From sequence record NC_048053.1: DNA of 64,000 bases; one strand, written 5' to 3'. The position numbers and the translations under genes are program-made. This document shows positions 16,410 through 50,365 of the stretch, piece by piece. Position 1 is the first letter of the stretch. The number at the start of each line of letters is the position of its first letter. The notes beneath the pieces were generated by a model. It searched no databases and was not told where the DNA came from. It was given only the letters and a program-made list of their open reading frames with translations.

Positions 16410-18188
16410 TTAGAAAATTTTGCGCTTAACTTGTGAATAGTAAACTTCAAAAGGAGCGCCATATAAAGCAGGGCCACGTTGCGCACGCGCCGTAACTTTA
16501 CCTGTATGAAGATGCACTTCGGTGATTTCTACCGTAGGCTGTTTCGGGCGAATAGTTTCGTAGATAGGTGCATTCAACGTAGGATAATCCTCGTAGAATT
16601 TAGCGAAACTTTCTTGCTGTTCTTTGGTAGCAGGAGGCAGAGTTAAACGCAATTCAGCGGCTTTCTTACCACGCGCCAAACGAACAGCACCTTTTTTCAA
16701 AGGTACGCCTTGATACATCAGATAAGAAGTAATGCGGCGAGCAATACCCAATACCTGATCATAAACAACGTCATTCATTTCTGGCGCACTAAAACGAATT
16801 CCGGTTGTTGGTTGTGGATGAGCCAGACGAACGCCAGTGCTGAAATAACCTTCTTCAATCAGGCGGCGCAAGAAGTCATAGGTTTTTGCAACGGTGCCGT
16901 CATAGATCGGAAATTCAATTTTTGGCGCATCAGCTTTAGGTTCAACAAAAGTTGGAAGCTGAACAGGCGCAGCCATTTTAACAGTCTGCGAAACTTTATA
17001 AGTGTTCTCCAGAATAGGAGTTGTTTTGATTACAACTTTATTCTTAATTGCTTTCTTATAGTTTTCGTCAGTGGTGAGTGAAGTAAATAGGCGATAGTCA
17101 ACCGGACTCGTATAGCCGCCGATAATATCGCGCACCTGCGTTTGCAGTTTTGCCTGCGTGTCAGCAAAAATTACGCGACTACGGTTAGGCGTACTCGGAG
17201 AAACCGGGAAGAACGCGCCGTAAACAGTTTTGATGTTGCGCGGCGATCCTGTTCCCGTAACCTTAGTTGCATTTTCCAGTTTCGGAAGTTTTTCAGCCTG
17301 ACCGACAGGCGCAACTTTCGGCGTACTGCGAATCGCTTTACCTTTAATATAACTGGTGCCTTCCGGATCAACAGTCAGATTACTCAGCAGAGTTTTCACT
17401 GCTTGAGAATCCATCCAACTTTCAATAGGAACAGCGAGATTGTGCGCGAGATAATGTTTCTTACGGCGCAGCAGAACAACAGTGCCTTTCGGAATAAGAG
17501 GCGAGAGAAGTTTTTTCTTCGCAGTTCCGACATAAGCAAACGAGTCGTTCTTCAAATCTGAAATTTGACCAAACGGTGCGGTAAATTCCAGAGCGCCCAT
17601 GATGTTCTGCGCAGTTTCATGGCCGCGAACAATAAACTGAATTCGAGGACTATCTTTCAAACGAAGATCATAACGGTCTTTGTTGAGATAGGTAATCTTG
17701 ATCAGATCGCCTTTCTCAAGTTCCAGATCATATTCGTCCGAAGCATCATCTACCGCCATTTTCTTGCCAGTATATTTGAGATACTTAGGCGCGGCAGATT
17801 CAGAGCTAACATCCAGCACATCGAAAACACGTTGAGAGTTTTCAGCATACTCACGCGCAGCAAGCATAGCGGTAGCGAGATTGTAGCTAATGGATTTTTC
17901 TTTCGGTGGAACTAACTGAACATGAACACTGCTACTTGCGCTCATGAAAACAGTTTGATTATCGTCGCGAGTTCCGGCGAAGTGCATTCCAGTAAGACGC
18001 TCTACCGCGTCAGCACTAATGCTTTCGTGTGCGATACGATCACCGGGAACAATTTCAGTGATCTCCCCACGGTGCCAGACATATGCGGCGCGTCCGTTAT
18101 GACCAATAAAATGATCACCTACTTTAGAAATTGACCGTGGGATAATTCCCAAGTCAGAGATAACGCGAGAAGGTTTTTGAACAATCAT
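16410..18188 (-). CDS. putative internal head protein
   Basis: 592 aa; several N-terminal S-x-S motifs; two copies of the shared Y(K/R)YxG domain. Confidence 0.65.
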   Translation of the reverse strand: MIVQKPSRVISDLGIIPRSISKVGDHFIGHNGRAAYVWHRGEITEIVPGDRIAHESISADAVERLTGMHFAGTRDDNQTVFMSASSSVHVQLVPPKEKSISYNLATAMLAAREYAENSQRVFDVLDVSSESAAPKYLKYTGKKMAVDDASDEYDLELEKGDLIKITYLNKDRYDLRLKDSPRIQFIVRGHETAQNIMGALEFTAPFGQISDLKNDSFAYVGTAKKKLLSPLIPKGTVVLLRRKKHYLAHNLAVPIESWMDSQAVKTLLSNLTVDPEGTSYIKGKAIRSTPKVAPVGQAEKLPKLENATKVTGTGSPRNIKTVYGAFFPVSPSTPNRSRVIFADTQAKLQTQVRDIIGGYTSPVDYRLFTSLTTDENYKKAIKNKVVIKTTPILENTYKVSQTVKMAAPVQLPTFVEPKADAPKIEFPIYDGTVAKTYDFLRRLIEEGYFSTGVRLAHPQPTTGIRFSAPEMNDVVYDQVLGIARRITSYLMYQGVPLKKGAVRLARGKKAAELRLTLPPATKEQQESFAKFYEDYPTLNAPIYETIRPKQPTVEITEVHLHTGKVTARAQRGPALYGAPFEVYYSQVKRKIF

Positions 18189-18197
18189 GACCTGTCC

Positions 18198-18638
18198 TTA
18201 TATCGAAATTTTTCGCATTGAGTGTTGCTGGAGAAGTCGAAGATTTCCAAACATCACATTATATGCAGAGGTTCCATACGTGTGGATGAGTTCGCGAGGA
18301 ACAAACGTGCCGAAATAAAGACAGTTAGGATCGAGTTGAGTGATTTCCATTCCAACGTTTTTATCAATGTTGGAAACCACCCACACCCACGGTTCCGCAA
18401 AGAAACGATCATTGCGAACATGGATACGATAACCAATTGCCATTTCTCGACCGCTAGGATCAAACGAAAACAGATCAACAGTTTTCTTATTCATTGCTTT
18501 CTGTACGGTGAACAATGCCATCGTGCGAAACTTTTCAGAAAACTGCGGAAGGTGCGCGTTGTCCTGTTCTATTTGCAGCAAGATTTTGTCTTGCTGTTCC
18601 TGCGTCATCTTTCCAAAATATTTTATTGCGAAAGGCAT
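18198..18638 (-). CDS. hypothetical protein
   Basis: 146-aa ORF coupled to the upstream kinase gene. Confidence 0.75.
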   Translation of the reverse strand: MPFAIKYFGKMTQEQQDKILLQIEQDNAHLPQFSEKFRTMALFTVQKAMNKKTVDLFSFDPSGREMAIGYRIHVRNDRFFAEPWVWVVSNIDKNVGMEITQLDPNCLYFGTFVPRELIHTYGTSAYNVMFGNLRLLQQHSMRKISI

Positions 18639-19216
18639 TTCAGAATCTCCCCGACAATTTCGGTAGGAGTTGTATTATCGGTACTGAATACTGCATCATA
18701 GCCGCCCGGAAGATTCCGATAACGGTCTTGATACATTTCGAAAGTTTCGGCATCGACCATACGCGCTTCAATATTGTCGCTACCTTCGCGCTTATCGCCA
18801 CGACGAGAAACATAAGTGTCGTATGTGCAAGTAAGCAGGATGCTAACTACTTGAACATCCGGACGCAGAATATTAACAGTGCGATCAAACAGCACTTGCG
18901 TCTTATCGTCTTTGACTTGCAGCGCCCACGTTGAAGGCCAGCCACGATCAGAAATAACTACATCGGCAGAGGACTCCGCAAGATAATCCATCAAAGAAGA
19001 TCGTGCGGCGAGAAACAGAAGCATTTCAGTTGTCGGCGAGCGCACATTATTATCATGCAGCGCGATGTTGCGAAGCTGTTCCGCAAGTGGAGTTGTTCCC
19101 GGCTCTCGAACACGGATAACACTCATATCGCGCAAACGCAGAGACGATTCTAAAATTTCTGCGGTAGTGGATTTTCCCACACCTTCTGTTCCTTCAAGGA
19201 GGATGTATTTTTTCAT
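18623..19216 (-). CDS. tmk: thymidylate (dTMP) kinase
   Basis: P-loop EGTEGVGKST; VREPGTT; LLFLAAR; VISDR; start reassigned to MKKYILL. Confidence 0.93.
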   Translation of the reverse strand: MKKYILLEGTEGVGKSTTAEILESSLRLRDMSVIRVREPGTTPLAEQLRNIALHDNNVRSPTTEMLLFLAARSSLMDYLAESSADVVISDRGWPSTWALQVKDDKTQVLFDRTVNILRPDVQVVSILLTCTYDTYVSRRGDKREGSDNIEARMVDAETFEMYQDRYRNLPGGYDAVFSTDNTTPTEIVGEILKCLSQ

Positions 19217-19220
19217 TTGA

Positions 19221-19709
19221 TTACCTAAACTTGCCTCCACGCCATGCAGCATGGATTAGAAGACGGGAAAGGATTTTGTTTGATGTTTCGTGTGCTGTAG
19301 CATTCTTTTTAACTCGCGCATTACCTAAAGAAGTTACAACAATAACCCCCGCTCCGCTGCCTTTAATGCGAGCAAGAATTTTCTCTCCGTGAGATTCAAA
19401 CAAACGTTCAGAAATAACGAAATAAAACTTGTGGCAGTATTCAAAGTATTTGTGCCATTTCTTATCAGAAGAGAAATCAGCCCAACTACTTTTGACCTCA
19501 GAGATTACTACATGACATTTTGTGTTGAGTGACCAAACATCTGCACGTAGATTGCCGTATTTGTTCAAACCAAATTCAATGTGATTAGAATATCTCTTAT
19601 CGATCCAGTAACCCACAACTGCTTCCGTTAAAAAGGCAGTTGTCTCGCCACGCGACAAACTTGTGAAAACAACTGCGGGTTTCCGGATTTTAATTCTTCT
19701 ACGACGCAC
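19221..19709 (-). CDS. mmcB: MmcB-family PD-(D/E)XK nuclease-like protein
   Basis: RADVWSL...ISEVKSSWADFSSDKKWHKYFEYCHKFYF is the MmcB/DUF1052 signature. Confidence 0.85.
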   Translation of the reverse strand: MRRRRIKIRKPAVVFTSLSRGETTAFLTEAVVGYWIDKRYSNHIEFGLNKYGNLRADVWSLNTKCHVVISEVKSSWADFSSDKKWHKYFEYCHKFYFVISERLFESHGEKILARIKGSGAGVIVVTSLGNARVKKNATAHETSNKILSRLLIHAAWRGGKFR

Positions 19710-20151
19710 CTAATTCCAACTTCTTGATTGCCTGTTTCAGAACAGGTTTCCAATCGCGATCAATCTTTTTAAGCGCATCTTCGGCAGAGAACCAACGACG
19801 TTCGCGTTGATGTACTTCCAGATAGTTATCAAGTTCTTCATGCACCTGCATCAAAAACCATGTTACTTTCTGGAGGCGTCCGGTACTGCCTTTAACGTAT
19901 TCCATTTTAGCAATTTTCTTGCCGGGAACACCGCGCAGACCTGCCTCTTCCATTGCCTCTTTTATCGCGCTCGCTTCCAACGAAAGATCCGGTTCCTTAC
20001 CGCCTTTTGGTAATCCCCAATTGTTCGCGTGCTTTGTGCGAATCATGCAGATTTCCAAATCACCTTCATCGTTGTAGCGATACGGAATAACGCCGCTTTG
20101 TTTGCGAGGCTTGCGCCCGTCGCCTTCATCCAACGTGAGAATAACTTTCAT
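19699..20151 (-). CDS. Nudix hydrolase
   Basis: WGLPKGGKEPDLSLEASAIKEAMEEAG Nudix box; N-terminal SGVIPYR. Confidence 0.92.
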   Translation of the reverse strand: MKVILTLDEGDGRKPRKQSGVIPYRYNDEGDLEICMIRTKHANNWGLPKGGKEPDLSLEASAIKEAMEEAGLRGVPGKKIAKMEYVKGSTGRLQKVTWFLMQVHEELDNYLEVHQRERRWFSAEDALKKIDRDWKPVLKQAIKKLELGAS

Positions 20152-20654
20152 AAATAATCATTCGCTCTCGGTTTCGGTTCATCCCAATTCCACGCACGGT
20201 CTACCCAAAAACCTGCTTTGGAAAGCGCGTCAACTGCACTACGAAGAGTCGAACTTCCGACAACCACATATTCTACAATTGCGTCGCCAACATTATAACC
20301 ATACTTGTAGTTACCCAAGCAATAGGCGAAAGACGATTGTTTTGGATCGAAAAGAACTTCTCCTGACTGACTCACGACGATTGCGCTGCACGGCGCACCT
20401 TCCGGAACAGTAGAAAGAATTTCAATACGAGCGTGAGGATTGCGACGATAACAACGTTGAACGAATTGAGCACAATCAGCAAAGGAACGTGCAATAATTG
20501 CAGCGCGACTATCGTTATATTGATGTGCGTCTTCAATGATATTGCGAGCACCAGTGAGATTAAAACCAGCAGCAGCGATCATAATAGCCAACGAAGACGG
20601 TTCAATCTGCGCGGCAAAAGTGTTTGAACCAAACACTTCCGGAAACGTTTTCAT
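20148..20654 (-). CDS. hypothetical protein
   Basis: start reassigned to MKTFPEV with GGGAG RBS. Confidence 0.75.
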   Translation of the reverse strand: MKTFPEVFGSNTFAAQIEPSSLAIMIAAAGFNLTGARNIIEDAHQYNDSRAAIIARSFADCAQFVQRCYRRNPHARIEILSTVPEGAPCSAIVVSQSGEVLFDPKQSSFAYCLGNYKYGYNVGDAIVEYVVVGSSTLRSAVDALSKAGFWVDRAWNWDEPKPRANDYL

Positions 20655-20680
20655 AAATATCTCCCAATGAATTGTCTTAC

Positions 20681-20965
20681 TCAAATTAGCGAGTTTGGAC
20701 AACTCAGTATTTGCATACGCGACGAGGTACGCAGAATACCGCCAATCTGCACGCCGTATTTTGTGGGATGTTTTTCACGCGTCCAGTTCACATTAACTTT
20801 CGCAAACTGTCTGATTGCACGATTGGCGAATTTTCCACGCAGAATAAGCAAATGGCTTCCATGAGGAAGCCCCAACTTGCGCGTAGAATCGCATACGAGT
20901 TTAAAGATGTTTCTGGCGTGAATCTCAGTAACTTCTTCCTCGCAAAAAATTCTAATCTTTAGCAA
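20681..20965 (-). CDS. hypothetical protein (probable TTG start)
   Basis: fills the gap between neighbours; GGGGA 8 nt before TTG at 20965. Confidence 0.45.
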   Translation of the reverse strand: MLKIRIFCEEEVTEIHARNIFKLVCDSTRKLGLPHGSHLLILRGKFANRAIRQFAKVNVNWTREKHPTKYGVQIGGILRTSSRMQILSCPNSLI

Positions 20966-21578: not shown

Positions 21579-21587
21579 AGTGTTTCC

Positions 21588-24256: not shown

Positions 24257-24259
24257 AAG

Positions 24260-24481: not shown

Positions 24482-24487
24482 GTAACC

Positions 24488-30787: not shown

Positions 30788-31456
30788 TTATTTCTCCACG
30801 ATGATCAAACAAGGACGCATAGCGCCGTCGATTTTCATCATAGCCGCACCGACAATATAACCACGCGGAATAACTTTTAGCACTGCATCCTCAAGCGCTT
30901 TTTCCCACTTGTCTTTTGGCTTACCATCAAACGGGGAATAAGTATCCGTCGCATCATAGTAATTATAAGTTTCAGTTGTTGGCATAGGAACGCCAGCAAG
31001 AAACTCTAAACGATTTGCGCCAGAAATTTTCGCCTTACGAATTGCTTCTGTCAGTTTTTTATTTTCTTTGCCGACAGAGTTATCCACTTCGTAGATACGT
31101 GCTTCCATCGGTGCATCTTTTGGCTTAGTAGGAAGTTTTTCTTGAGCCGTGGTATTTGCTTTCTTACCAGTGACTTTGATTCCCTTCACCTTGCCAGTAA
31201 ACGGACGCGAACGACCTAACAGAGAGCGTGCAGTTTTAGCGTCAATCAGAAAAACAACATCGGGATCGTCACGATGCAGCACATAGATTTTATTCTTAAT
31301 GATGCACGTACCAAAAACATCTTTGGCTTCGATATCTGCCTCGAAATCTTTGTTCTCGATATAAACTTTTCGAGCACCTTCGAAACGATACCAGTCACAA
31401 TCTTCGATTTTGATTTTCGGTAAACGCGGAGCAGATACACTCACAAAAAACAGCAT
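30788..31456 (-). CDS. putative head protein with shared Y(K/R)YxG domain
   Basis: N-terminal VSVS-A motif; DWYRFEG...DVFGT domain. Confidence 0.6.
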   Translation of the reverse strand: MLFFVSVSAPRLPKIKIEDCDWYRFEGARKVYIENKDFEADIEAKDVFGTCIIKNKIYVLHRDDPDVVFLIDAKTARSLLGRSRPFTGKVKGIKVTGKKANTTAQEKLPTKPKDAPMEARIYEVDNSVGKENKKLTEAIRKAKISGANRLEFLAGVPMPTTETYNYYDATDTYSPFDGKPKDKWEKALEDAVLKVIPRGYIVGAAMMKIDGAMRPCLIIVEK

Positions 31457-34850: not shown

Positions 34851-35324
34851 TTATTTAATGCGCAGACGCAGACCAGAGGAAGATGATTCAAACTCACCAT
34901 CATCATTTGATTCTTCGTCATCGCCTTCGAATTCGAGATCATCGAGTTCGTCATCTTCAATCAGCAAATCATCTTCTTCGTCTTCCGGTTCATCTTCCGG
35001 ATCGCCTAGTGAAAGGGATTCGAAATCGTCTCCATCATACAGAGATTGTTGTTTCGCTTTAGAAGTTGTCGTTACCAAAGCAGCAGAAAGCGCTTGCACG
35101 GAATCGGCAAGCGAAGAACTTGCGGCGCTGACTGATTCACAAGGATTTGCACACACATCAATTAGAGTGCTTGCTTCAACGCTATCAGATAACTGACACG
35201 TTAAGAAATCTTCGCAATCAGGAGCGTGAGCAGCTTGTACCAAAATACGAGCTACATCTTCCCACTGGTTTTCGCGTGCCGCAACAATCGCAAGAGCAGC
35301 TAGGGAACCTGTCAACGTTTTCAT
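34851..35324 (-). CDS. acidic head-associated protein
   Basis: 157 aa with D/E-rich C-terminus; ESVS, ESLS and ESSS motifs. Confidence 0.75.
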   Translation of the reverse strand: MKTLTGSLAALAIVAARENQWEDVARILVQAAHAPDCEDFLTCQLSDSVEASTLIDVCANPCESVSAASSSLADSVQALSAALVTTTSKAKQQSLYDGDDFESLSLGDPEDEPEDEEDDLLIEDDELDDLEFEGDDEESNDDGEFESSSSGLRLRIK

Positions 35325-35419: not shown

Positions 35420-36514
35420 TTAGGCTCTCTGCGCTTTAGCCACGGAGCGAACGTTAGCCAGCGTGAAGGAGAACACGCTAGACAGCAGCCAGCCACGGTC
35501 AGTAGAACCCTGATTCGCGCCAGAAGTAGGCTGAGACTGAGTGCCGCCGCGAGTGGTGTACATCGCGTGGTAATCCTGATCAGCTACAACATACAGTTCG
35601 CCGTCTTGCAGTACGCGATGTTCCGGAGCGCGGAAACCGTCAGTAACCAGATCCAGACCGAGCAGAGTACCGAGACGACCAGTAGTGATCAGTTCGTATT
35701 TACTTACCGGATCGAGAGCGGAAGTAAACTGATCGTTACCGATGATATCGTTCCAGTAATCAGCCGCCAGAATCGCGGTAGTTACAGGCATAGGCCACGC
35801 GCTCACTTGCTGTTTCAGAACAGACAGCAGGCGCGGAGTCAGTTCGCCGTGAATGTAAGTTACCGGGTTAGCCATACCGACAGAACGATCCGCCGCTTCT
35901 TTCCACAGACGATCTTCTGCAACCATGATAGATTGCAGACCGTCTTGCTGCGCACGATCCAGCAGGTCGCCGTTGATCTGTTCCAGATCCATGCGAGAAA
36001 CACGGATGATGGATTTCAGTTCAAACTCGTCCGGAGTGAACACACGACCGCGCAGTTGGCGATAACCATATTCAGAAGGACCGGTTGCAATAATTGCCTG
36101 GGCCTGGTGAGTTTTCAGTTCCACACGCGGAACGTCGCCCTGACGAACGGTTGCGCCTTTACAGATGCGACGCAGAAGACCTTGACGTTCAGCACGGTCT
36201 TCGATTGCGCCAACAATTGAGGCACCGAGAGAATCCCACTTCGCCGGATCAGCAGCAGCTTCTTCGATCAGTTGACGGTTTTCTTCGCGAATCTGATCTT
36301 TGGTCATGCCAACGTGAGATTCAGAAACTTCCTGAATGTCGCCGTTTTGTGCAGCATTCAGCAGTTGACCGATACGACCGATGAGATCTTTCTTGCTGAT
36401 CGCGTTCACTTCGCCCGTCGATTCAGACAGAATACGCTCACCGTTAATTTTCAGATCGTGCAACGGGTCGCCGTTACGCAGAACAACTTTAGCACCACGC
36501 AGTTGATTTTTCAT
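35420..36514 (-). CDS. major capsid protein (HK97 fold)
   Basis: 364 aa, strongly biased codons; follows protease, scaffold and a decoration-like gene; LLRRIC...QGDVPRV...DEFEL pattern. Confidence 0.88.
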   Translation of the reverse strand: MKNQLRGAKVVLRNGDPLHDLKINGERILSESTGEVNAISKKDLIGRIGQLLNAAQNGDIQEVSESHVGMTKDQIREENRQLIEEAAADPAKWDSLGASIVGAIEDRAERQGLLRRICKGATVRQGDVPRVELKTHQAQAIIATGPSEYGYRQLRGRVFTPDEFELKSIIRVSRMDLEQINGDLLDRAQQDGLQSIMVAEDRLWKEAADRSVGMANPVTYIHGELTPRLLSVLKQQVSAWPMPVTTAILAADYWNDIIGNDQFTSALDPVSKYELITTGRLGTLLGLDLVTDGFRAPEHRVLQDGELYVVADQDYHAMYTTRGGTQSQPTSGANQGSTDRGWLLSSVFSFTLANVRSVAKAQRA

Positions 36515-37336: not shown

Positions 37337-39325
37337 TTAGCGACCGAAGCGACGTTTCAGCCTTTCGTCGAAAGATTCTTTAGAAGAACTTTGCGATTCG
37401 ACGGTTTCCAAACTTTCTTCACGTTCTTCTTTAGAAACGCTAGGAACTTTCGGAGTTTCTTTCGTCTGACGTACAGTACCAGCCGAACCAGCAACGGCTT
37501 CGGCGATTTCGTTCTGAGCTACTTCTGATTTTGCCATCAGCGCATCAGCCTGAGACAGAGAAGCACGCAGGAAATCTTCCGAATTGTTGATGAATGCACG
37601 CTCAACCAGAGGGCGCGGATCTGCGATACCTGCATTACGCAGAGTAGCGCAAAGTGATTCAACAACCGGGTTGCTGGAATCGCGCCAGAAGTTGCGTGTA
37701 ATGCCGAGCATCGAAGTGGACAGTGCCGCAACGAAACGCTCACGATGGGATTCAACCATATCGCTAACAGTTTCGTTTACCGTAGAGGAAACGCTGTTAA
37801 CGCGAGCGTCAGCTTCCGCAGTCAGCATTTTGCTAACAGACAGTTGCATAACGAACGGTTCAAAGCCAAAGTTTTTGCAGGTTTCTTCCACGCCAGCATT
37901 GTGCAGAGATTTACTCACAGCACGAATGAAATCTTCTTTATCGAAGACGCGACGCGCAGAATCTTCACCAGCGGCGTTGCTAAAGCTACTGAAAGTAGCG
38001 CGTGCAACAGGTTGACCGTCATAGAACAGGTGAACCGCAGGAACACGACCGTTAACGGTGCGAGACAGAGAAACCAGAGACGGATCGAGATTTTCGTGTT
38101 CAGCTTTAACCGCAGAGAGGCTATCGAAAGAGCGAACTTCCGCAGCGTTTTCATCTTTGGTATTCAGATTGCGAACAGAACTTTCGGATTCAATTTCGTC
38201 TTCGTCGTCAAACTCTTCGTCGTCGAAATCATCATCATCCTCATCTTCTTCTTCTTCGTCGTCGAATTCTTCATCTTCGAATTCTTCTTCGTCGTCGAAG
38301 TCATCTTCTTCGTCGTCTTCGTCATCACCGGAGCAGGACTTTTTAGATTTGGATTCAGAGTCGAAATCTTCGTCGTCCTCTTCTTCCTCATCATCGAATT
38401 CTTCGTCATCGAATTCTTCGTCATCGAATTCTTCGTCATCCTCTTCTTCGTCTTCGTCGGCAGAAGATTCAGAATCAAACTCTTCGTCATCTTCCTCTTC
38501 TTCGTCTTCGTCGAAGCCTTCATCATCTTCCAGTTCCTCTTCTTCCAGAATATCGGAAGAATCATCGTCACTGCTTTCAGAAGCAATGTCGATCAGAGGC
38601 GCGGAACAGTGAGCGCAGAAAACAGTGTCGTCGTCAGTTGCGATGGTGAACGGAGCCGCGCAATTTGCAGAGCAAGAATATACGTGAGCTTCCAGTTTAC
38701 CGTTCGAAGACAGCGCCTGAATTTCTTCGCTTTCCAGAACTTTGGATTCGCTAATCGGCAGACAGCTATACGGATCGAAGTGAACGCCATCAGCGCAAGC
38801 AACAAAACTTGTTGCGGAGGACAGAGCAGTAACTACGTCCTGTTTGCGAATTGCGTTTGCCAGATTCTGTTTTGCGTTTGCCAGCGTAGTACCCACGGCA
38901 ACAACAGAAGAACGAGAAACAGATTCTTTGTTTTCGTTTTCCATGTGGTCGAGAATACGATCATCAGAAACTTCTTCCAGACTTGCAGAGCAAGACGGGC
39001 AATGCGTGATATTCGCACTGCTATCACTAACGATGTGACAGCCGCAACCATCCAGACAGATATGGTATTGTGCTTTCACGTTAGCGGCAGAAGATTCGGA
39101 TTGGAATTCGGCCTGCGCCACCAACTCAGCGTCTTCTTCAAGCAGCTTAGTGCTGCCTTTCGGATCGAAAAGGTCAACGTTGCTTTGCGAAGCATAAACG
39201 TCGCCGCTCTCAGAACGGTAGAACATAGAGTTCTGACCAGTTGCAGTTTTGCGGAAGTTTTCGACTGCTTGAGCGTGGCTGCCACCGACACTAACAATCC
39301 CCGCCAGACGGGTAGTTTTAGGCAT
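37337..39325 (-). CDS. scaffolding / prohead core protein, highly acidic, with two Zn-ribbon units
   Basis: long D/E tract; CLDGC..CPSC and CSANC..CAHC; many SES motifs; start reassigned to MPKTT. Confidence 0.75.
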   Translation of the reverse strand: MPKTTRLAGIVSVGGSHAQAVENFRKTATGQNSMFYRSESGDVYASQSNVDLFDPKGSTKLLEEDAELVAQAEFQSESSAANVKAQYHICLDGCGCHIVSDSSANITHCPSCSASLEEVSDDRILDHMENENKESVSRSSVVAVGTTLANAKQNLANAIRKQDVVTALSSATSFVACADGVHFDPYSCLPISESKVLESEEIQALSSNGKLEAHVYSCSANCAAPFTIATDDDTVFCAHCSAPLIDIASESSDDDSSDILEEEELEDDEGFDEDEEEEDDEEFDSESSADEDEEEDDEEFDDEEFDDEEFDDEEEEDDEDFDSESKSKKSCSGDDEDDEEDDFDDEEEFEDEEFDDEEEEDEDDDDFDDEEFDDEDEIESESSVRNLNTKDENAAEVRSFDSLSAVKAEHENLDPSLVSLSRTVNGRVPAVHLFYDGQPVARATFSSFSNAAGEDSARRVFDKEDFIRAVSKSLHNAGVEETCKNFGFEPFVMQLSVSKMLTAEADARVNSVSSTVNETVSDMVESHRERFVAALSTSMLGITRNFWRDSSNPVVESLCATLRNAGIADPRPLVERAFINNSEDFLRASLSQADALMAKSEVAQNEIAEAVAGSAGTVRQTKETPKVPSVSKEEREESLETVESQSSSKESFDERLKRRFGR
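38391..38435. repeat. 15-nt tandem repeat x3 (DDEEF)
   Basis: tcatcgaattcttcg repeated three times. Confidence 0.9.
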
Positions 39326-39408
39326 GGTGAAACCCTCTATAAATAAGTCGGTTATCGACACATTAAAATTAATGAATGCAGGAAATTTTCGAAAGTTTTT
39401 GAAACTTT

Positions 39409-40512
39409 TTAAAGCGTCCGGCTTTCAATATCTTCGTCCGGAATATAGCGGTTTACGAAATATTTTTCGACCACATCAATTCCGTTTAGAGCGTAAACTT
39501 TTCGCAGACTATCTCCCCAAACCATAAGTTCAGCAAGAGTAGCGAAATGTTCCATTGCCATCGTATTCTTTCCGGCGGCAACGTTCCTTATTGGATGAAT
39601 GTCTTTGCCTGCGATTGCCGCTTTGAATTTCATTCTATCCACATTTCGAAGCAGGGTTGAATCAATGAAATGCGCAAGTTCGTGAGTAATAACATGAGCT
39701 ACGCTTTTACTATTGAAACCGCCGAGCAACTTAACGATTTGTTTCGGGTCGAGGATGATTACTCCGTATTGCACACCGTTATAGCGAGTGTTCAAAATAA
39801 AGCAGCCATCATCACTTAAACCGAGTCCGATAAACAAACGTTTAAACGGCAACGGAACTTTTAATCCGATTGCAGGCATTACGTTATCCTGAATATCTTG
39901 CATTACATAATCAGGACAAGAGCGAGCGGATATACTGGAGCGTAAACCTGTTTTCAAATAATCCTCGTAGCTTTGAACTTCGAGTTTTACTTTGCCGCAT
40001 TTTTCCAGTTTCTTCACTTCGTAGTTATTAATGCTGCCGCCACCATAAACAGTATTAGCGTATTTCAGAGGCTTTAACTGTTTGTAGTTGACGTGTTCTT
40101 TTTCCTGAATTTCTTGCGCACGTCGCGTATTAGCGATTTCTTCCGTTTCATTAGAAACGGGCGCAGGTGCAGGAACAGCACTTTTATTTACTTGAGAAGG
40201 ATAAGCTGTAGGTGCCGGAATTGGCGCAGCAATTTCAGGCTTCGGAGTCTCCGAAACGTTCGCTTCTGGTATATCGAAATTAAAATTTTCAGGAAAAAGT
40301 TTCGCAGGATTTGCAGTAAATTCGCGAGAATCTTCACGCACCTTATTTCCCAATTCAATTGCAACTGGAATAACTTGTGATTGTTTTGGACTAGCGATAT
40401 AAGCAACGCCATCCCCAAATGCAACGCCAACAACATCACGCGTAGTTATTTCCAGTCCATTAGATCTCAGCGGCTCGCCGCCTAAATAACGATAAAAAGT
40501 AAAATCTTTCAT
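39409..40512 (-). CDS. zinc metallopeptidase-like protein
   Basis: ITHELAHFID (HExxH) plus downstream EHFA; N-terminal shared FYRYLG domain. Confidence 0.75.
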   Translation of the reverse strand: MKDFTFYRYLGGEPLRSNGLEITTRDVVGVAFGDGVAYIASPKQSQVIPVAIELGNKVREDSREFTANPAKLFPENFNFDIPEANVSETPKPEIAAPIPAPTAYPSQVNKSAVPAPAPVSNETEEIANTRRAQEIQEKEHVNYKQLKPLKYANTVYGGGSINNYEVKKLEKCGKVKLEVQSYEDYLKTGLRSSISARSCPDYVMQDIQDNVMPAIGLKVPLPFKRLFIGLGLSDDGCFILNTRYNGVQYGVIILDPKQIVKLLGGFNSKSVAHVITHELAHFIDSTLLRNVDRMKFKAAIAGKDIHPIRNVAAGKNTMAMEHFATLAELMVWGDSLRKVYALNGIDVVEKYFVNRYIPDEDIESRTL

Positions 40513-41330
40513 CAGCGTTTAATCTGCATTAGTTGGTTAACTTCGGTTGCTGCGCAGGCGAATGCAGGATCATCAACAGAACTACATTCAAAACCAGTAA
40601 GCAGCAAACAGTTGCGATATGCAAGACGGCCTGAACGTGCATCAAGTTTCGTCGGCACATTGAACGCAGTATGTTCGCAGAAGTTACGCGTTTTAGGAGT
40701 AACTAAACGACCACAGATACTGCATTCATATGCTTTGTATGTCGTGCCTTTCGAATACGTGTTCAGTTCACCTGAAAGAATACGGCGGCAACGTTCCGGT
40801 TCCAGTGTACGGTCAAATGCCAGCAGCAAACTAAGTACCGCGTGATTGCCACGGAAACCAATGAGCGGAGACAAATGACTATCGAAAATAATTCCGCGTG
40901 CTTTCGTATAGTCTTTGTTTGCGTGCTCAATAAAAGTTGGTTTTCCTTTAAAAGTTTGGAAAGCCAATTTTCCTTGATCGGGATTGAAGCGCAACCATTC
41001 TTCTTTCGAAAATCCATCGCCGTTAGTGTTAGGCAATTCAGTTACGTTAACCGGAACAGGAACGATGATATAATCGCGAATATCTTTTGACGTGTTATAA
41101 ACTTCCGCAGCTTTGGGCAACCACACGTTGATATCAAGCATTAAATCGCTAGATGCCCCAATGCGATTGCCTGCAATGCGAATAGATTTATTATCGCGGG
41201 AGGCTTCTTCTTTGTGAAGATCAATTGCTTCCATTCCCGTGTGTTGAGTAGAACTCAGGTCGAAAGATTTACTCTCAACGGAATTGCTAATAGCAGCAAC
41301 CGTTCCTTCATTTTTAAGTCGAATAGTCAT
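40512..41330 (-). CDS. prohead maturation protease
   Basis: PNTNGDGF...FKGKPTFIEH...YSKG...CSICG...ECSSVDDPAF pattern (His/Ser) of phage head proteases; upstream of the scaffold. Confidence 0.8.
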   Translation of the reverse strand: MTIRLKNEGTVAAISNSVESKSFDLSSTQHTGMEAIDLHKEEASRDNKSIRIAGNRIGASSDLMLDINVWLPKAAEVYNTSKDIRDYIIVPVPVNVTELPNTNGDGFSKEEWLRFNPDQGKLAFQTFKGKPTFIEHANKDYTKARGIIFDSHLSPLIGFRGNHAVLSLLLAFDRTLEPERCRRILSGELNTYSKGTTYKAYECSICGRLVTPKTRNFCEHTAFNVPTKLDARSGRLAYRNCLLLTGFECSSVDDPAFACAATEVNQLMQIKR

Positions 41331-41336
41331 ATTGTT

Positions 41337-41759: not shown

Positions 41760-41763
41760 ACAA

Positions 41764-42651
41764 TTACCTTAACGCAGACCGCGCCCAAGTTTTTGCAAGT
41801 TCAAGAGAAAGACGTTGCGGATTATGGAGTTTCACTTCGCCGCTATGAACAGCAGTGTACGGTTCGTTTTGATTCTCGCCTTTACCGCTACGGAAAGCAG
41901 CTTCATTAAATCCGTGGAACAGTGTCGTAATCCAGCCGCTACCTTTTGGATTTTGCTCACCGAGTTTTTTATCCCAACGAATAATTCCGCACGTTTCGCC
42001 GCCCACACAGACCAGATAGCAAATTTTTTCGCCGCCTGTATAAATATCTTTTTGCTTATGAGTGCGGAAAGTTACGCGACTGGATTCAGAAACAACTTCT
42101 TCCTGTTTCTTACGCAGATTACCAGAAGTTTTCTGTTTCAAATCGTCGATATCAAGCGTACTCCAGTAGCTCTCAAACAGCGCAACCAATTTATTCGCAA
42201 TAGGAATATCGTCGAGTTGGTTGATTTGCGCAATAGTGCTGGAAGGATCATCGATGATTCGATTCACAAAGAACGAACCAACAATAACCGGAAGTACACT
42301 GCGTTGCGCAGGATTAGTTACGCCAGCAGCATTGAGGTAATTGGCGCTCAAACCAATTGCGAGTCGAGCTAAAACAATGAAAGTTTCTTTTTCAGTAGCA
42401 TTAGCAATAGTTGCCATTAAACGCGCAGCAACAGCAGGATCGGCGGTGCGTTGTGCCAAGCCTTCGATTTCGACTTTAGACAAAGACTTTCCGAGTTTCT
42501 TTTGTGCTGCAAGTTCAAAAGCATTTTCGAGTTTAATAGCGTTTGCACGATTTAAACTATTTTCGATTTTCTGTACAGTTTCTTCGGACGAAGAAAGAGA
42601 AATGCCCGTACTTCTACGGGCAACGTTATGGCGTCGTCTTACTTGCGGCAT
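41764..42651 (-). CDS. putative head protein
   Basis: start reassigned to MPQVRR (GAGGT RBS); GISLS-SS and VVSES-SR motifs. Confidence 0.65.
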   Translation of the reverse strand: MPQVRRRHNVARRSTGISLSSSEETVQKIENSLNRANAIKLENAFELAAQKKLGKSLSKVEIEGLAQRTADPAVAARLMATIANATEKETFIVLARLAIGLSANYLNAAGVTNPAQRSVLPVIVGSFFVNRIIDDPSSTIAQINQLDDIPIANKLVALFESYWSTLDIDDLKQKTSGNLRKKQEEVVSESSRVTFRTHKQKDIYTGGEKICYLVCVGGETCGIIRWDKKLGEQNPKGSGWITTLFHGFNEAAFRSGKGENQNEPYTAVHSGEVKLHNPQRLSLELAKTWARSALR

Positions 42652-42658
42652 GATAACC

Positions 42659-43759
42659 TCATTGAGATTTCTGCAACTTTTCCAGTAATCCAGACGATTT
42701 GAGAGACTCATTCACATCAAGACCACGTACAGAACATAGTTGCGCATAATAATGAATCGCCTTATCAACCATGCCGAGAGATTCGCAGCACTGATAAGCT
42801 ATATTCAAACACAGGTCTAAATTACTTTGTGATGAGTCAAAAAGAAGAGGAGTTTGATTTTTTGCATTGATTCCTTGAAGCGCCAATGCGAGCGCATAAA
42901 CATAGTCGCCATAGCGGAACATTATATCCGCAAACGTTCCATAACTTTCAGAACGATCAGGACGAGCAGCAATTGCCATATTGCTTGCGCTGATTGCAGT
43001 GTGTCGATCACCTACCATGTAAGCGGCACAACTCAATTCAACATTGATCAGGCAAACATAATCTTGCCAGTAAGCAAGTTTATTCAGCCGAGAGATTTCA
43101 GCAACAGCTTCCTGATATGCCTGTCTATCAATGTTTTTTGCTTTGCACGAATCCAAAACACGATAGCAAAGTTCACGCGCATAATAAAATAAACTGCGCT
43201 CATCGCGTGGATTGTCTGTAACGTCTGCCGCAAGTTCAGGCAAATAGTCACGCGGTTTTTCCAAATCAGGATAATGCGTTGTGTGAAAATCTGCATCCAC
43301 AACCGATTCCGGAAGGTTGTCAATTTTCATCAAAACTTCATGCGCACGATATTTCCACGCATAACGTTTTTTCAGATAGGCTTTATGTTGAAAATAAATA
43401 CTACCGCCATTGTGCATATTGATGCGCACAGTATCCGGAACCGCAGGAAGAGACTTTAACGATTCGACCCAATCAGGATCAGAGAATCGTTCGTCGATAT
43501 CCAGCCACACAATCAGATCATCAGGTTGAAAAGGCGCTGCCGCAAGATTGCGACTTTCACCGAGATTTCTACCACCGTTCGGATCTATATCATACGCGAA
43601 ATGTAATTCCGGATGATTAAACCGCTCGATAAATCTAACCGTATTGTCGGTGCTGCCAGTGTCAACGATAGAAATCGCATCGGCTTTCGCAACATGGTTT
43701 AAAAACGCTTCCATGTTCTTTTCTTCGTTGCGACAAATCGCAGCTACGCACACACGCAT
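42659..43759 (-). CDS. glycosyltransferase family 2 with TPR repeats
   Basis: VAAICRNEE...IVDTGSTD...WLDIDE (DxD)...HE; C-terminal TPR helices (RSLFYYARE, RPDRSESY). Confidence 0.9.
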   Translation of the reverse strand: MRVCVAAICRNEEKNMEAFLNHVAKADAISIVDTGSTDNTVRFIERFNHPELHFAYDIDPNGGRNLGESRNLAAAPFQPDDLIVWLDIDERFSDPDWVESLKSLPAVPDTVRINMHNGGSIYFQHKAYLKKRYAWKYRAHEVLMKIDNLPESVVDADFHTTHYPDLEKPRDYLPELAADVTDNPRDERSLFYYARELCYRVLDSCKAKNIDRQAYQEAVAEISRLNKLAYWQDYVCLINVELSCAAYMVGDRHTAISASNMAIAARPDRSESYGTFADIMFRYGDYVYALALALQGINAKNQTPLLFDSSQSNLDLCLNIAYQCCESLGMVDKAIHYYAQLCSVRGLDVNESLKSSGLLEKLQKSQ

Positions 43760-43769
43760 AAGTGTTTCC

Positions 43770-46654: not shown

Positions 46655-46677
46655 GAAAATTCCCTCTGCAAATATCC

Positions 46678-47601
46678 TTAAACATTTACAGTTTCGGCGA
46701 TGCGATTCGCAATAAAATCAGGAACCGTATTCATCGTTAAGCCATTACGTTTCGCCAACATAATAAACGCTTCTGCGTATTTAAGTTGTTGACTACCAAC
46801 ACCGCTAAATTGACGAGCATTGAGCAAGCGTCGAGACAGCTCGGAAACGATTGTTTGGCGAGTACGGAAACCGGAATTGATGTTTCGCAGCATTTGAAAA
46901 TACTTATGAACATCAGACTTGATTGAGAAAGTTTTAATGCCACTAAAATCTTTTCTGATAGCAGCATGAAGCAACACAAGGAAAGGATACAAATCTTCTT
47001 TCTGTCTGGCTTCGTTTTGTTTCTCAATGTCCTTAATGAAATCAGGACGGTTATCAGGTTCAGGAATTTGTTTGCCAGTGAGAGTCGAAGTCACATCGTT
47101 AAACAGTCCGATGCGTTTAATAGGCTTACGCGACAGCATATCTTTTTTGCTGCCATAGAAGTAGACTGGAATATTTCTTTTGCGTGCCTGCAAAGCAATA
47201 CCACGCAGATACATTCCATTACTTTTAATTCGCGCCTCTTCTTTTGTTCCAGCATTACAGTGAATTTCTTTAACGATACTGATATCAATATCCGGCTTAT
47301 CGATAATAATGCGTTCTTCGGACTCAGAATATTCAGCGCCGTTCTGCCAGAAATCAACAGGAACAACTTTATAGCGCGACCGGATTTTGTCAGCGTCAAG
47401 CACAAACAAAACTTCCGATCCGCCATTAGTTCGAATTGCGAAAATATTACTCAGTGTGCGGGTAGTGGAAAGGAAGAAGAGTCTGTTTTGAGAAAACTCT
47501 TCTTCCGCCTCGCTTCCGGAGGCAATACTCAAATGAAATTTTCCACTTCCCACAATACTCAGCGCATTTTTCGGCGAAGTAAAGTGGAAGAGTGTATTCA
47601 T
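46678..47601 (-). CDS. ADP-ribosyltransferase-fold protein (paralog 2)
   Basis: LFHFT...FFLSTTR...VLFVLD...SESEER. Confidence 0.55.
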   Translation of the reverse strand: MNTLFHFTSPKNALSIVGSGKFHLSIASGSEAEEEFSQNRLFFLSTTRTLSNIFAIRTNGGSEVLFVLDADKIRSRYKVVPVDFWQNGAEYSESEERIIIDKPDIDISIVKEIHCNAGTKEEARIKSNGMYLRGIALQARKRNIPVYFYGSKKDMLSRKPIKRIGLFNDVTSTLTGKQIPEPDNRPDFIKDIEKQNEARQKEDLYPFLVLLHAAIRKDFSGIKTFSIKSDVHKYFQMLRNINSGFRTRQTIVSELSRRLLNARQFSGVGSQQLKYAEAFIMLAKRNGLTMNTVPDFIANRIAETVNV

Positions 47602-48440
47602 AGATCTTTTATCGCCTCATAAATAAAACGAGGAATACCCGCGATTGTAATGCCTTGCTGTTTAGCAAGAATCGCAAGTGCTCGCGGAGTTTTCACGCGC
47701 GAATCATCGCTAGGATAATTGCGAGAGTTTCCGATATCATTACGCAGACCCGTTGCCAGTTCATTGTAACGATATTGATCGCCGTAGCTTCCACGAATTT
47801 TATCGTAGATATATGCAACTTCACTATCACCTTGCTTTAAAAGTTTAGGGATAGTTTTATTGATCGCTGCGTGCATCAATTGAAGCCACGGCATAACGTA
47901 GTCTCTACGGCTACGCGGAATATAACCACCACGAATGATTTTAGATTTAGCCAGAATGCGAGGATCATTAAGAGGTACGCGACGCTCTTTACGCATTGAG
48001 ATCATATCTTTTTGATTGTCGTAGGCAAACACGCTTACCTTTCGGCGTGAGCAAGCCAAAACGAGATCGCGAAGATATTTTCCATCATCGTTACGATCCA
48101 AGTTAATGTGAACAGCAATAATAAACGGCGTCGCCGGGATAGTCGGCTTATCAGTAATCAAACGTTCCTCAGCTTCGGAATATTTGTGATTCGCCCAATA
48201 GTCCATCGGTTCAAGTTTGTAACGAGACTCAAGAGCACGTCCGTCAAGTTCAAACATTACGCCGTGTGCTTTATCCGCAAACGCATTGCTTCGAGTACGC
48301 GTAAGAGACAGATAAAACAACTTACCTTTATTGATTGCTTCGTCAGATTCGGCAGCATCTGCCATACTCAGAAAGAATCGGTTATCAGAAACAATCTGCG
48401 CCGCTTTGTGAGTTTGAGTAAAGTGATATAAAGGTTTCAT
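47598..48440 (-). CDS. ADP-ribosyltransferase-fold protein (paralog 1)
   Basis: LYHFT...FYLSLTR...VMFELD...SEAEER. Confidence 0.55.
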   Translation of the reverse strand: MKPLYHFTQTHKAAQIVSDNRFFLSMADAAESDEAINKGKLFYLSLTRTRSNAFADKAHGVMFELDGRALESRYKLEPMDYWANHKYSEAEERLITDKPTIPATPFIIAVHINLDRNDDGKYLRDLVLACSRRKVSVFAYDNQKDMISMRKERRVPLNDPRILAKSKIIRGGYIPRSRRDYVMPWLQLMHAAINKTIPKLLKQGDSEVAYIYDKIRGSYGDQYRYNELATGLRNDIGNSRNYPSDDSRVKTPRALAILAKQQGITIAGIPRFIYEAIKDL

Positions 48441-50365
48441 CAGCTTACAATAGGTTCCTTGTTGACTTCAAACTCTTCTGACATATCGTACACGCGAGCG
48501 AATAGAGTTGGTTTCATATCCTTCACATGTTCTGCAATATCGAAAAGACTTTGTTTGCGAGCTTTATTGATTCGCACCTGACGAACTTCGTCCGGGCTGT
48601 TAGTGATATCGTAAAGCGTGTATACGATAATACTGTCAGAAGATTTATGCGGAGCTTCGCGGAGAATTACCCATTCACGTTTGAGTTTTTCATCGGCTTT
48701 GAACACCACAATATCGCCTGCTTCCGGATTCGCCAATTTCTCTGGCGTGCCTTTATTTTCTGTAGCTTGTTTTTTAGCAAGTTCAGCGGCCTCCTGTTCA
48801 GCGTTGAGAACATCCTCATCGACTTCATCGGAATCAGTTTCATCAATATCAGCAGCGTCGTCTTCGGAATCCGCTTCTTCCTCATCCTCTGAATCATCTT
48901 CTGAATCATCCTCTGAATCATCTTCTGAATCATCTTCTGAATCAGGATCTTCATCTTCTGCATCAGGATCTTCATCTTCTGCATCAGGATCTTCATCTTC
49001 TGCATCAGGATCTTCATCCTCAGAATCAGTTTCATCTTCTGAATCATCCTCTGAATCAGTTTCGTCTTCGGAATCAGTTTCGTCTTCCTCAGAATCTGAA
49101 TCATCCTCTGACTCTTCTGGAGCAGGTTTCGCGCCTTTAGCTTTTTTCTTAACTTTAGACGGTGGCGCTTCTTCCTCTTCGTCTTCCGGTTCTTCCTCAA
49201 CATCGGACAAATCGAAATCACTATCGACAGAATCAGAATCATCGCCTTCGCCGAACATGGAACCTATAACCGAATCAATTCCCATATTGTCGCTGGCGAA
49301 CGGACGCGCAGAAAGAATATCTTCAAGCGGAGCAAACATATCGTCTTCCTCTGCCAATTCTTCTTCCGCTACTTCCGCTTCAAGTTCTGCATCTAAATCC
49401 TCTTCTTCCTCTAATGCTTCTTCGGCAAGAATGGATTTGATTTGATTGCGCAGACGAACAGTAGGTACAGCGTTCTCTTCCGTGTCGAACGTGAGCGGTT
49501 TTGCAGTAGGAGCTTCCATTTCACCACGTTTGATTTTTTCTTTCATTTCATCAAAACGTTCTTGCTCTGCGCGAGCATTTTCTTTTTGCGCTCGTTTCGC
49601 GTCACGCGCAGAAACTTCCTTAGCAAGTTTTTCAGCACGCTGTTCAAGACGCGCAGCTTCACGCATTTCAACCTGCGAGCGATGTTTCAATTTTTTACTA
49701 TTGGCACGATATGCCTTAACGTCAGCATCGGACAGGGAACCGTTGGGCCAGTCCTGAATCGGCATAACGAGAGTTTCCGCAACAACTTTATCGTAGTTTT
49801 CCGGAGAGAGTTTTAAATACATCCCTTTCTCGTTAATAATAACGCCACCTTTCGCATCGCGAATATAACGCATACCGATCATTTCGTTCTTTTTCAGAAT
49901 CTCTTTGCCTTTAGTGTGAGTAACAGTCAAAGACAACTCTGGAACGATACGCCACTGATAGTTGCTAAAATCAATGCCGTTTTTATATTCATTAGGAACA
50001 GTGCGCGGAGCAAATCGAGCATTGTCGAAATTCTTACGCTGCAATTGACGTTCCGTAGTTTTAACGCCGCGAGCTTTCGAACGGCCTTCGCGCTGAACGA
50101 TATCAGGCAATTTGCGCAGTTTGGTTGCACGTTCAAGCAACTGATTACCGTTCTTTTTATCGAGCGGAAAATTGATATGAGGCATATCAGGAAAAATAAG
50201 AGTGAAACGAGATCCGCTTTTCAGAGACTTAACGCCAAAAATATCGCCTTCGCGAATCATGCGTTTATGGGTACGTTCCGAAACTTCTTTGCCTCGTTGC
50301 CCTGTATATTTGAACCAGTTGTATTCGCTAACCGCTTCGTCATATGTAGCCGACTGAGAGAGCAT
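48440..50365 (-). CDS. acidic putative internal head protein
   Basis: N-terminal LSQS-A; shared WFKYTG domain; D/E low-complexity tract. Confidence 0.7.
   Translation of the reverse strand: MLSQSATYDEAVSEYNWFKYTGQRGKEVSERTHKRMIREGDIFGVKSLKSGSRFTLIFPDMPHINFPLDKKNGNQLLERATKLRKLPDIVQREGRSKARGVKTTERQLQRKNFDNARFAPRTVPNEYKNGIDFSNYQWRIVPELSLTVTHTKGKEILKKNEMIGMRYIRDAKGGVIINEKGMYLKLSPENYDKVVAETLVMPIQDWPNGSLSDADVKAYRANSKKLKHRSQVEMREAARLEQRAEKLAKEVSARDAKRAQKENARAEQERFDEMKEKIKRGEMEAPTAKPLTFDTEENAVPTVRLRNQIKSILAEEALEEEEDLDAELEAEVAEEELAEEDDMFAPLEDILSARPFASDNMGIDSVIGSMFGEGDDSDSVDSDFDLSDVEEEPEDEEEEAPPSKVKKKAKGAKPAPEESEDDSDSEEDETDSEDETDSEDDSEDETDSEDEDPDAEDEDPDAEDEDPDAEDEDPDSEDDSEDDSEDDSEDDSEDEEEADSEDDAADIDETDSDEVDEDVLNAEQEAAELAKKQATENKGTPEKLANPEAGDIVVFKADEKLKREWVILREAPHKSSDSIIVYTLYDITNSPDEVRQVRINKARKQSLFDIAEHVKDMKPTLFARVYDMSEEFEVNKEPIVS
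48941..49020. repeat. 21-nt tandem repeat, about 4 copies (DEDPDAE), flanked by 12-nt SEDD and 18-nt SEDETD repeats
   Basis: atcaggatcttcatcttctgc repeated. Confidence 0.9.

Follow-up and report, generated by a model that had tools for sequence, protein, structure and literature searches.

Serine-x-serine motifs in head-assembly proteins of Dickeya phage vB_DsoM_JA29 as a candidate local form of a small-x-small head-maturation cleavage signal

Results

Head module and samples

The window analysed here is a stretch of 64,000 nucleotides from Dickeya phage vB_DsoM_JA29 (NC_048053.1, 253,323 bp, genus Salmondvirus; positions 62001-126000 of the record), in which all genes lie on the minus strand. 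It carries, in this order, the genes for the head maturation protease gp134, gp133, gp132, the virion structural protein gp131 and the major capsid protein gp130, and our subject is a motif of two serines separated by one residue (S-x-S) that recurs in the proteins of this head module. An initial annotation of the window had taken such motifs for the cut sites of an unusual head protease with serine at P1, and for a mark of internal head cargo. All the motifs that it quoted are present in the window proteins and its protease is indeed gp134, while two of its gene names needed correction, the "scaffold" being gp132, which is annotated as an "ATPase", and the "capsid" being gp130. The coordinates of genes and sites are collected in Table 1.

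Motifs were counted over the whole JA29 record (325 open reading frames (ORFs), 79,983 amino acids), and the expectation for gp132 was derived from 3000 composition-preserving shuffles. Conservation was followed in 11 annotated relatives that we aligned (JA11, pEa_SNUABM_5, pEa_SNUABM_7, AD1, Yoloswag, Alexandra, Y3, Sen-NF, fHe-Yen9-02, PaBG and Lu11), and gp132 additionally in 51 more homologues, sampled separately from a large protein collection. Clades were compared across 80 loci around capsid homologues, taken from viral contigs and split by capsid identity into one clade at or above 70% (Dickeya, Erwinia, Yersinia and Salmonella phages) and one below 60% (Pseudomonas-type and environmental phages). 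The same head module, with a capsid identity of about 70%, was found in Salmonella phage Sen-NF (108.5 kb) and Alcaligenes phage Afa-NA1 (78 kb), whose records are far shorter than those of the ~255-kb relatives and may be partial assemblies; the protease region of Sen-NF carries no annotation.

Enrichment of S-x-S in gp132

In gp132 we distinguish an N-terminal region, two clusters of Cys, a stretch in which 70% of the residues are acidic (Asp+Glu; 247-385), a domain at the C-terminal end and finally a basic tail. Neither a Pfam domain nor a Walker A motif was found in it, and its homologues are labelled "ATPase", apart from that of PaBG, labelled "60S ribosomal-like protein L2-A". The acidic low-complexity stretch probably gave rise to the "ATPase" label of this family, which would then be an artefact. 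The PaBG homologue, gp82, was not among the 14 Coomassie-stained virion bands of that phage.

Generic S-x-S is abundant in the genome (485 observed against approximately 410-418 expected), so that a single listed S-x-S means little alone. Strong per-protein enrichment was confined to gp132 among the 325 ORFs. This protein has 27 S-x-S against 11.4 +/- 2.8 expected, a count reached in none of the 3000 shuffles, and the excess was also found for hydrophobic-x-S-x-S (15 against 2.5), for S-x-S-[S/A/G] (13 against 2.9) and for the two combined as hydrophobic-x-S-x-S-[S/A/G] (10 against 0.7). Serine pairs at other spacings (SS, S..S, S...S and S....S) showed no enrichment over shuffles. The motifs of gp132 include FQSES, PISES, IASES, FDSES (twice), IESES, VESQS, TALS and QALS, together with YRSES, which the initial annotation had not listed; seven of the gp132 sites read S-E-S.

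The comparison of head with tail proteins that the initial annotation had called for came out in its favour. Tail proteins of the window (12,945 residues) held 72 S-x-S against 68.9 expected and 13 S-x-S-[S/A/G] against 16.0, whereas both forms were in excess in gp132, in the other head-module proteins (1,829 residues; 16 against 8.6 and 6 against 2.0) and in the proteins with a KMPT-N domain described below (1,455 residues; 14 against 5.9 and 5 against 1.2).

Conservation of the serines and the switch to alanine

Within gp132, serines inside S-x-S were better conserved than its other serines (0.64 v 0.38; P = 0.002, Mann-Whitney test). In orthologues the two serines of a site persist, and the residue between them may be E, Q, S, A, K, T, H, N, L, V or D. 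Five gp132 sites (residues 46-48, 76-78, 285-287, 402-404 and 644-646) had a small residue at both positions in at least 80% of the 51-homologue sample, and the next residue was mostly small too.

The two clades differed in which small residue they use. In 20 distinct scaffold homologues from the clade at or above 70% identity, S-x-S was strongly over-represented (mean z +5.6; A-x-A +0.8), with 5.8 S-x-S-S per protein against 1.1 expected. In 40 distinct scaffold homologues from the clade below 60%, it was A-x-A that stood out (mean z +4.5; S-x-S +0.6), with 8.2 A-x-A-S against 1.1 expected (z +6.8). Other spacings of Ser or Ala gave z near zero in both. We refer to these as the Ser clade and the Ala clade. 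At several individual sites, S-E-S-S of JA29 corresponds to A-T-A-S or A-L-A-S in PaBG and Lu11; both forms occur there at or near the F-D-S-E-S units, and the equivalent of S402-L-S404 is A-L-S in PaBG and S-I-A in Lu11. Because A-x-A replaces S-x-S in the distant clade, selection acts on the small size of the P3 and P1 side chains and not on the chemistry of serine, and small residues two apart, usually followed by Ser, are what the S3 and S1 subsites of a protease would select. On the strength of the shuffles and of both sets of homologues, the S-x-S signal in gp132 is real and selected.

Table 1. Positions in the window of the genes, candidate cleavage sites and other features discussed
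Feature	Position	Strand	Remarks
gp132	37337-39325	minus	662 residues; annotated "ATPase"; between protease/gp133 and gp131/capsid gene
gp132 site S46-Q-S48	39182-39190	minus	both Ser in 7/8 enterobacterial-clade relatives, middle Q/N/T; P3 and P1 at least 80% small (48 homologues)
gp132 site S76-E-S78, then Ser	39092-39100	minus	S-x-S in 8/8 relatives, middle E/Q/T/V; P1' small in 94% of homologues
gp132 Zn-ribbon-like Cys clusters	38990-39058 and 38603-38674
gp132 site S249-E-S251	38573-38581	minus	start of acidic stretch; 7/8 relatives, middle E/L/N/Q
gp132 site S285-E-S287 (F-D-S-E-S unit)	38465-38473	minus	6-7/8 relatives; at least 80% small (41 homologues)
gp132 further units like F-D-S-E-S	38351-38359 and 38180-38188	minus	6-7/8 relatives
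gp132 site S402-L-S404 (F-D-S-L-S)	38114-38122	minus	start of C-terminal domain; 8/8 relatives; P1' small in 98% of homologues
gp132 second site S419-L-S421	38063-38071	minus
gp132 site S644-Q-S646, then Ser	37388-37396	minus	8/8 relatives; P3, P1 and P1' 100% small in 51 homologues
gp132 basic C-terminal tail	37340-37387	minus	16 residues, directly after the S644-Q-S646 site
gp130 major capsid protein, HK97 fold	35420-36514	minus	PHROG 2522; residues 78-360 align to 6wkk_A (phage G capsid protein), E = 6.4e-10
gp130 N-terminal region, residues 1-97	36224-36514	minus	candidate propeptide, from alignments
gp130 candidate site S30-E-S32	36419-36427	minus	mass loss 9% if cut after S32
gp130 candidate site S64-E-S66	36317-36325	minus	mass loss 18% if cut after S66
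gp130 candidate site S95-L-G97	36224-36232	minus	mass loss 26% if cut after G97
gp134 head maturation protease	40512-41330	minus	PHROG 18299
gp134 candidate self-cut S20-K-S22	41265-41273	minus	S-x-S-F-D conserved, x = K/Q/E/H
gp134 invariant His136	40923-40925	minus
gp134 invariant Ser193	40752-40754	minus
gp134 Zn-ribbon insert, residues 203-220	40671-40724	minus	conserved as far as phage G gp19
gp133	39409-40512	minus	metallopeptidase-like; KMPT-N domain at residues 1-64 (PF20294, 59.5 bits); H-E-L-A-H motif at 39670-39684
gp129, small acidic head-module protein	34851-35324	minus
gp129 site S64-V-S66	35127-35135	minus	conserved in enterobacterial-clade relatives
gp129 site S147-S150 (Ser run)	34875-34886	minus	conserved in enterobacterial-clade relatives; precedes basic tail (34854-34874)
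gp136	41764-42651	minus
gp136 site S188-E-S190	42082-42090	minus	S-(E/L)-S-(S/A) in 9/9 aligned orthologues
gp142, KMPT-N protein	48440-50365	minus	PF20294, 62.4 bits; domain at 50120-50332
gp142 site S3-Q-S5, then Ala	50351-50359	minus	7 residues ahead of domain; orthologues S-(Q/V/L/E)-S-A
gp124, KMPT-N protein	30788-31456	minus	55.2 bits; domain at 31202-31408
gp124 site S6-V-S8, then Ala	31433-31441	minus	ahead of domain; about 20 distinct orthologues S-(V/T/E/A/L)-S-A
gp107, KMPT-N protein	16410-18188	minus	53.1 bits; domain at 17589-17789
gp107 internal site S129-E-S131, then Ala	17796-17804	minus	3 residues ahead of domain; orthologues S-(E/M)-S-A
beta-1,4-glycosyltransferase gene	42659-43759		in synteny, immediately upstream of the head module, in Lu11 and all enterobacterial-clade relatives
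Gene-poor stretch	14404-16409		about 2 kb; single short annotated ORF (gp106)
40-nt direct repeat	15501-15540 and 15820-15859		copies 85% identical; mutually complementary ends
Partial inverted copy of the 40-nt repeat	16218-16236

The capsid protein and the phage G anchor

The capsid protein gp130 has only two S-x-S, both of them SES (expected 0.09) and both within the first 66 residues, in ILSES (residues 28-32) and EVSES (residues 62-66). Across the wider family, the equivalent of the second site reads [A/S/T]-x-[A/S] and abuts the conserved core on its N-terminal side. There was no Pfam hit for gp130 itself; its match in the Protein Data Bank (PDB), the phage G chain 6wkk_A, is recognised by Pfam Phage_capsid.

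Maturation of the phage G capsid protein provides an anchor for these sites. Hua et al. 2017 (PMC5646251 Table 1) give 282 residues and 31.2 kDa for the gene product, and 255 residues and 28.2 kDa for the mature protein by N-terminal sequencing. From the capsid gene, fetched via the accession in PMC12484599, we computed 31.19 kDa for residues 1-282 and 28.17 kDa for residues 28-282. The published lengths and masses thus match residues 28-282, which places the phage G cut at the A27/Q28 bond, after A25-L-A27, a small-x-small sequence. The 280-residue PDB chain 6wkk_A would be wrongly taken for the mature protein, given the 282-residue gene product and the 255-residue mature form. In the capsid alignment to 6wkk_A, A25-L-A27/Q28 falls on S95-L-G97/A98 of JA29, where the Ser clade has S-L-G and nearly all of the Ala clade A-L-G. 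As a separate observation, phage G gp27, the capsid protein (15290-16138 of the fetched locus), has 9 A-x-A against 3.0 expected; of these, the link to a sequenced N-terminus holds for a single one, which ends at residue 27.

The capsid protein of PaBG loses approximately 20% of its mass as judged by sodium dodecyl sulphate-polyacrylamide gel electrophoresis (PMC7412058), and several PaBG virion proteins are processed. Transferred to gp130, this loss fits a cut at the second site (S66) best, although a gel estimate is compatible with the third as well. By the phage G alignment, the final cut may instead lie at S95-L-G97/A98 and not at either of the two SES sites. The likeliest course is that more than one cut would be made in the gp130 propeptide, the final one at 66/67 or 97/98.

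The protease gp134 and its neighbour gp133

Homologues of gp134 were found at 51 of the 80 loci, the PaBG copy lying elsewhere in its genome. His136 and Ser193 were invariant in samples of 52 and 42 homologues and align with phage G gp19, and they are candidate catalytic residues. A profile comparison (hhalign) of gp134 with gp19 gave a probability of 98.9% (E = 1.1e-17) over 167 columns that span His136, Ser193 and the Cys/His insert. The predicted structure (predicted local distance difference test score 85.7) matched, among predicted viral structures searched with Foldseek, PaBG, phiRSL1 and phage G gp19 first (gp19 E = 3.4e-12), and then BFVD models that bear the names "prohead serine protease", COG3740 or XkdF (E = 5e-7 to 1e-4), for which template-modelling (TM) scores were only 0.34-0.47. 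The adjacent gp133 had homologues at 24 of the 80 loci, all in the Ser clade.

Other candidate substrates

Besides gp133, the KMPT-N domain (PF20294, gathering cut-off 28.9 bits) is carried by gp107, gp124 and gp142, with no further copies in the genome. In these three proteins an S-x-S-A stands 3 to 9 residues before the domain, and gp107 as a whole has 7 S-x-S against 2.4 expected (P = 0.007). Since the proteins that carry KMPT-N are paralogous, the three sites do not count as independent evidence. Locus searches with gp142 and gp107 as single proteins returned only close relatives, and a literature search on KMPT-N found nothing relevant. The small acidic protein gp129 averaged 5.5 S-x-S per protein against 2.4 expected over 20 relatives, and it and gp136 each have conserved sites (Table 1). 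Outside the window, the portal protein (NC_048053.1 5328-7271) has 11 S-x-S where 5.0 are expected (P = 0.013), with an S-E-S at residue 18, and may be processed at its N-terminus.

Neighbouring gene-poor stretch

Next to gp107 lies the gene-poor stretch listed at the end of Table 1, in which no tRNA and no Rfam match were found. It contains the two copies of a 40-nt direct repeat and, further along, the partial inverted copy.

Discussion

A cleavage-code reading

We incline, with some reserve, to the view that a head-maturation cleavage signal runs through the whole family, with S or A at P3, S, A or G at P1 and often S, A or G at P1', and that S-x-S is the form it takes locally. The positions of the sites are those expected of maturation cuts: some mark the limits of domains, others lie in the N-terminal part of the capsid protein, near the start of the protease or ahead of a C-terminal tail. 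For JA29 we infer that the bond after the second small residue is cut and that gp134 is the enzyme. All steps would take place inside the prohead, where the serine protease gp134 would cut the scaffold-like gp132 at approximately ten conserved sites, one of them freeing its basic C-terminal tail, trim or degrade the capsid protein over its first 66-97 residues, and take off its own N-terminal peptide. It would also cut gp129 and gp136, and take short or long N-terminal pieces off the KMPT-N proteins gp142, gp124 and gp107.

The initial annotation had gone further in some respects than these data allow. Its S-x-S and A-x-S motifs do form a selected, position-conserved signal in head-assembly proteins, but a rule demanding serine at P1 describes it less well than small-x-small. 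Its idea that S-x-S by itself identifies head cargo does not survive the hundreds of occurrences expected by chance and the counts in tail families given below. Several of its examples (AAIS in the protease, ISLS in gp136, KSIS in gp107 and PISES in gp132) lack conservation in relatives and could have arisen by chance.

A number of observations weigh against the cleavage reading. The change from Ser to Ala is essentially one deep phylogenetic split, so the gp134 residues that differ between the clades (F107/V, S154/R and A258/V) are no evidence of co-variation, and residues 107, 154 and 258 do not track the few mixed lineages. The case for gp134 being a protease consists of its PHROG label, its invariant His and Ser residues and the predicted structures that Foldseek matched at low TM scores: neither gp134 nor any of 52 homologues had a Pfam peptidase match, only Zn-ribbon models being hit, and no match to a solved structure was found by sequence or by Foldseek (best PDB E = 0.96). 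In the capsid protein, the second Ser of the first site is not conserved in the wider family, which makes this site the weakest candidate, and the site lies within a conserved L-S-x-x-T-G-E block. The three KMPT-N sites may reflect shared ancestry. Pooled over relatives, the sheath, tube and gp128 families also have 1.2-2.4-fold the expected S-x-S, at small counts; density per family at such counts fails to separate head from tail, so that site conservation is needed as well for nominating cargo. A literature search found no peptide-level proteomics for PaBG, the JA phages or fHe-Yen9-02, and no N-terminal data for any phage of the Ser clade.

Alternative explanations

The motif might not be cut at all. 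As a structural or binding element, S-x-S or A-x-A could present a face of small residues for scaffold-capsid or scaffold-scaffold contacts: small residues at i and i+2 share one face of an extended strand, and several conserved sites lie within conserved blocks (F-D-S-L-S; L-S-x-S-T-G-E in the capsid protein). However, the motif recurs in contexts that have nothing in common, from an acidic low-complexity stretch to extreme N-termini, the positions before C-terminal tails and the N-terminus of the protease itself, while the homologous phage G capsid site is cut after A-x-A and processing of the PaBG capsid protein is documented. We regard an uncut motif as unlikely, though deserving of some weight. 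If cutting occurs, it could also be the work of the metallopeptidase-like gp133, with its KMPT-N domain and H-E-x-x-H motif, instead of gp134. The H-E-L-A-H sequence is accompanied by a weak, sub-threshold SpvD-like match, the pEa_SNUABM_5 orthologue is annotated as peptidase M34, and gp133 homologues are confined to the Ser clade. Yet the small-x-small signal is family-wide and includes clades without gp133 nearby, a homologue of gp134 is present in phage G, where the cut follows A-x-A, and PaBG gp83, in the equivalent position, is not a gp133 homologue, which leaves gp133 a distinctly improbable enzyme for these sites.

The remaining readings fare worse. A cut after the Glu of x-S-E/S, as in T4 and phiKZ, with Ser serving as P2 and P1' only, is suggested by the S-E-S at seven gp132 sites and both capsid sites; T4, phiKZ, 201phi2-1 and SPN3US proteases cut C-terminal to Glu, and that of SPN3US prefers Ser at P1'. 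The orthologue alignments, an indirect test, contradict this, as the Glu of S-E-S is not conserved: the middle residue varies at orthologous sites with both serines kept, and the sister clade has A-x-A-S. Moreover, gp134 is without similarity to T4 or phiKZ-type proteases, and we give this reading hardly any credence. The serines could alternatively be modified, by phosphorylation or by O-glycosylation through the neighbouring glycosyltransferase gp137, which stands in conserved synteny with the head module in all relatives. But the glycosyltransferase is present in both clades, and the sister clade has Ala-x-Ala at the same sites, where alanine cannot be modified in this way; modification of Ser is rejected on that ground, and we would be very surprised to see it return. 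Nor does chance, or the composition of Ser-rich proteins, offer a credible general account. The 485 S-x-S of the genome are near expectation and several minor examples are not conserved, and for isolated, unconserved S-x-S chance is the likely explanation. For gp132 it is refuted, the enrichment being restricted to spacing 2 and seen again in 20 relatives, with A-x-A taking its place in 40 more.

Comparison with known systems

Cleavage rules of head maturation have been worked out in detail for T4 and the phiKZ-like phages. The prohead proteases of T4, phiKZ, 201phi2-1 and SPN3US cut C-terminal to Glu, and those of T4 (gp21), phiKZ (gp175) and SPN3US (gp245) cut scaffold or core proteins at many sites, remove the capsid propeptide and N-terminal targeting peptides of cargo, and process themselves (PMC5694885, PMC10052503). 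The maturation logic is the same as that proposed for JA29, but P1 is Glu there and small (S/A/G) in the signal proposed for JA29, and gp134 had no Pfam, PDB-sequence or PDB-fold match to the T4 gp21/phiKZ gp175 type (MEROPS S77/S80). In phage G, a Bacillus phage, the protease (gp19) and capsid protein (gp27) are homologous to those of JA29 and the capsid protein loses 27 residues by a cut after A25-L-A27; unlike that of JA29, it is without a ~70-residue N-terminal extension, and its motif uses Ala, not Ser. The phage G literature that we searched states no motif or cleavage code.

Herpesvirus assemblin cuts after Ala, with Ser or Thr following, and one of its sites removes a C-terminal tail of the scaffold that binds the capsid protein (PMC4498786). 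This compares with the A-x-A-S of the distant clade and with S-Q-S-S before the basic tail of gp132, as a working principle only: assemblin has a Ser-His-His triad where gp134 has the candidate pair His136 and Ser193, and no match of gp134 to assemblin (MEROPS S21) was found in sequence searches or in Foldseek searches of the PDB. HK97-type proteases (COG3740/MEROPS S78) invite comparison through the low-TM Foldseek matches of gp134 to predicted structures, and the JA29 capsid protein shares the HK97 fold and a putatively removable N-terminal region. In contrast to the HK97-type arrangement with a capsid delta domain, JA29 has a separate large scaffold-like protein, and no Pfam peptidase hit, to Peptidase_S78 or any other family, was found in 52 members of the gp134 family. 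Signal peptidase I requires small residues at -3 and -1, the same small-x-small pattern; it is an unrelated membrane enzyme acting on exported proteins, and we propose no link.

We found no paper that states a small-x-small rule. The rule would be new for the JA29 clade, and "unusual", as the initial annotation had it, when set against the cut-after-Glu rule of the T4/phiKZ type; it would not be unusual for this protease lineage, being in line with the A-L-A of phage G, and it resembles the assemblin rule.

Implications

A bolder proposal is that one jumbo-phage lineage replaced Ala by Ser at P3 and P1 across all head-protease substrates (scaffold, capsid propeptide, protease and packaged proteins), and that the KMPT-N proteins are an unrecognised class of head-packaged cargo with cleavable N-terminal peptides. 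We offer it tentatively, as a possibility that we would not expect to hold in full; if true, the Ser/Ala swap would be a natural case of coordinated protease-substrate co-evolution.

The fundamentals of head maturation would be unchanged by a small-x-small rule. What it would provide is a rule readable from sequence for the PaBG/Lu11/Dickeya/Erwinia jumbo-phage family and phage G, by which the boundaries of mature proteins could be predicted for structural work. It would also nominate gp107, gp124, gp142, gp129 and gp136 as processed head proteins, and it would allow the "ATPase" gp132 to be relabelled as a scaffold-like protein. The natural switch between Ser and Ala would lend itself to studies of joint change in a protease and its many substrates.

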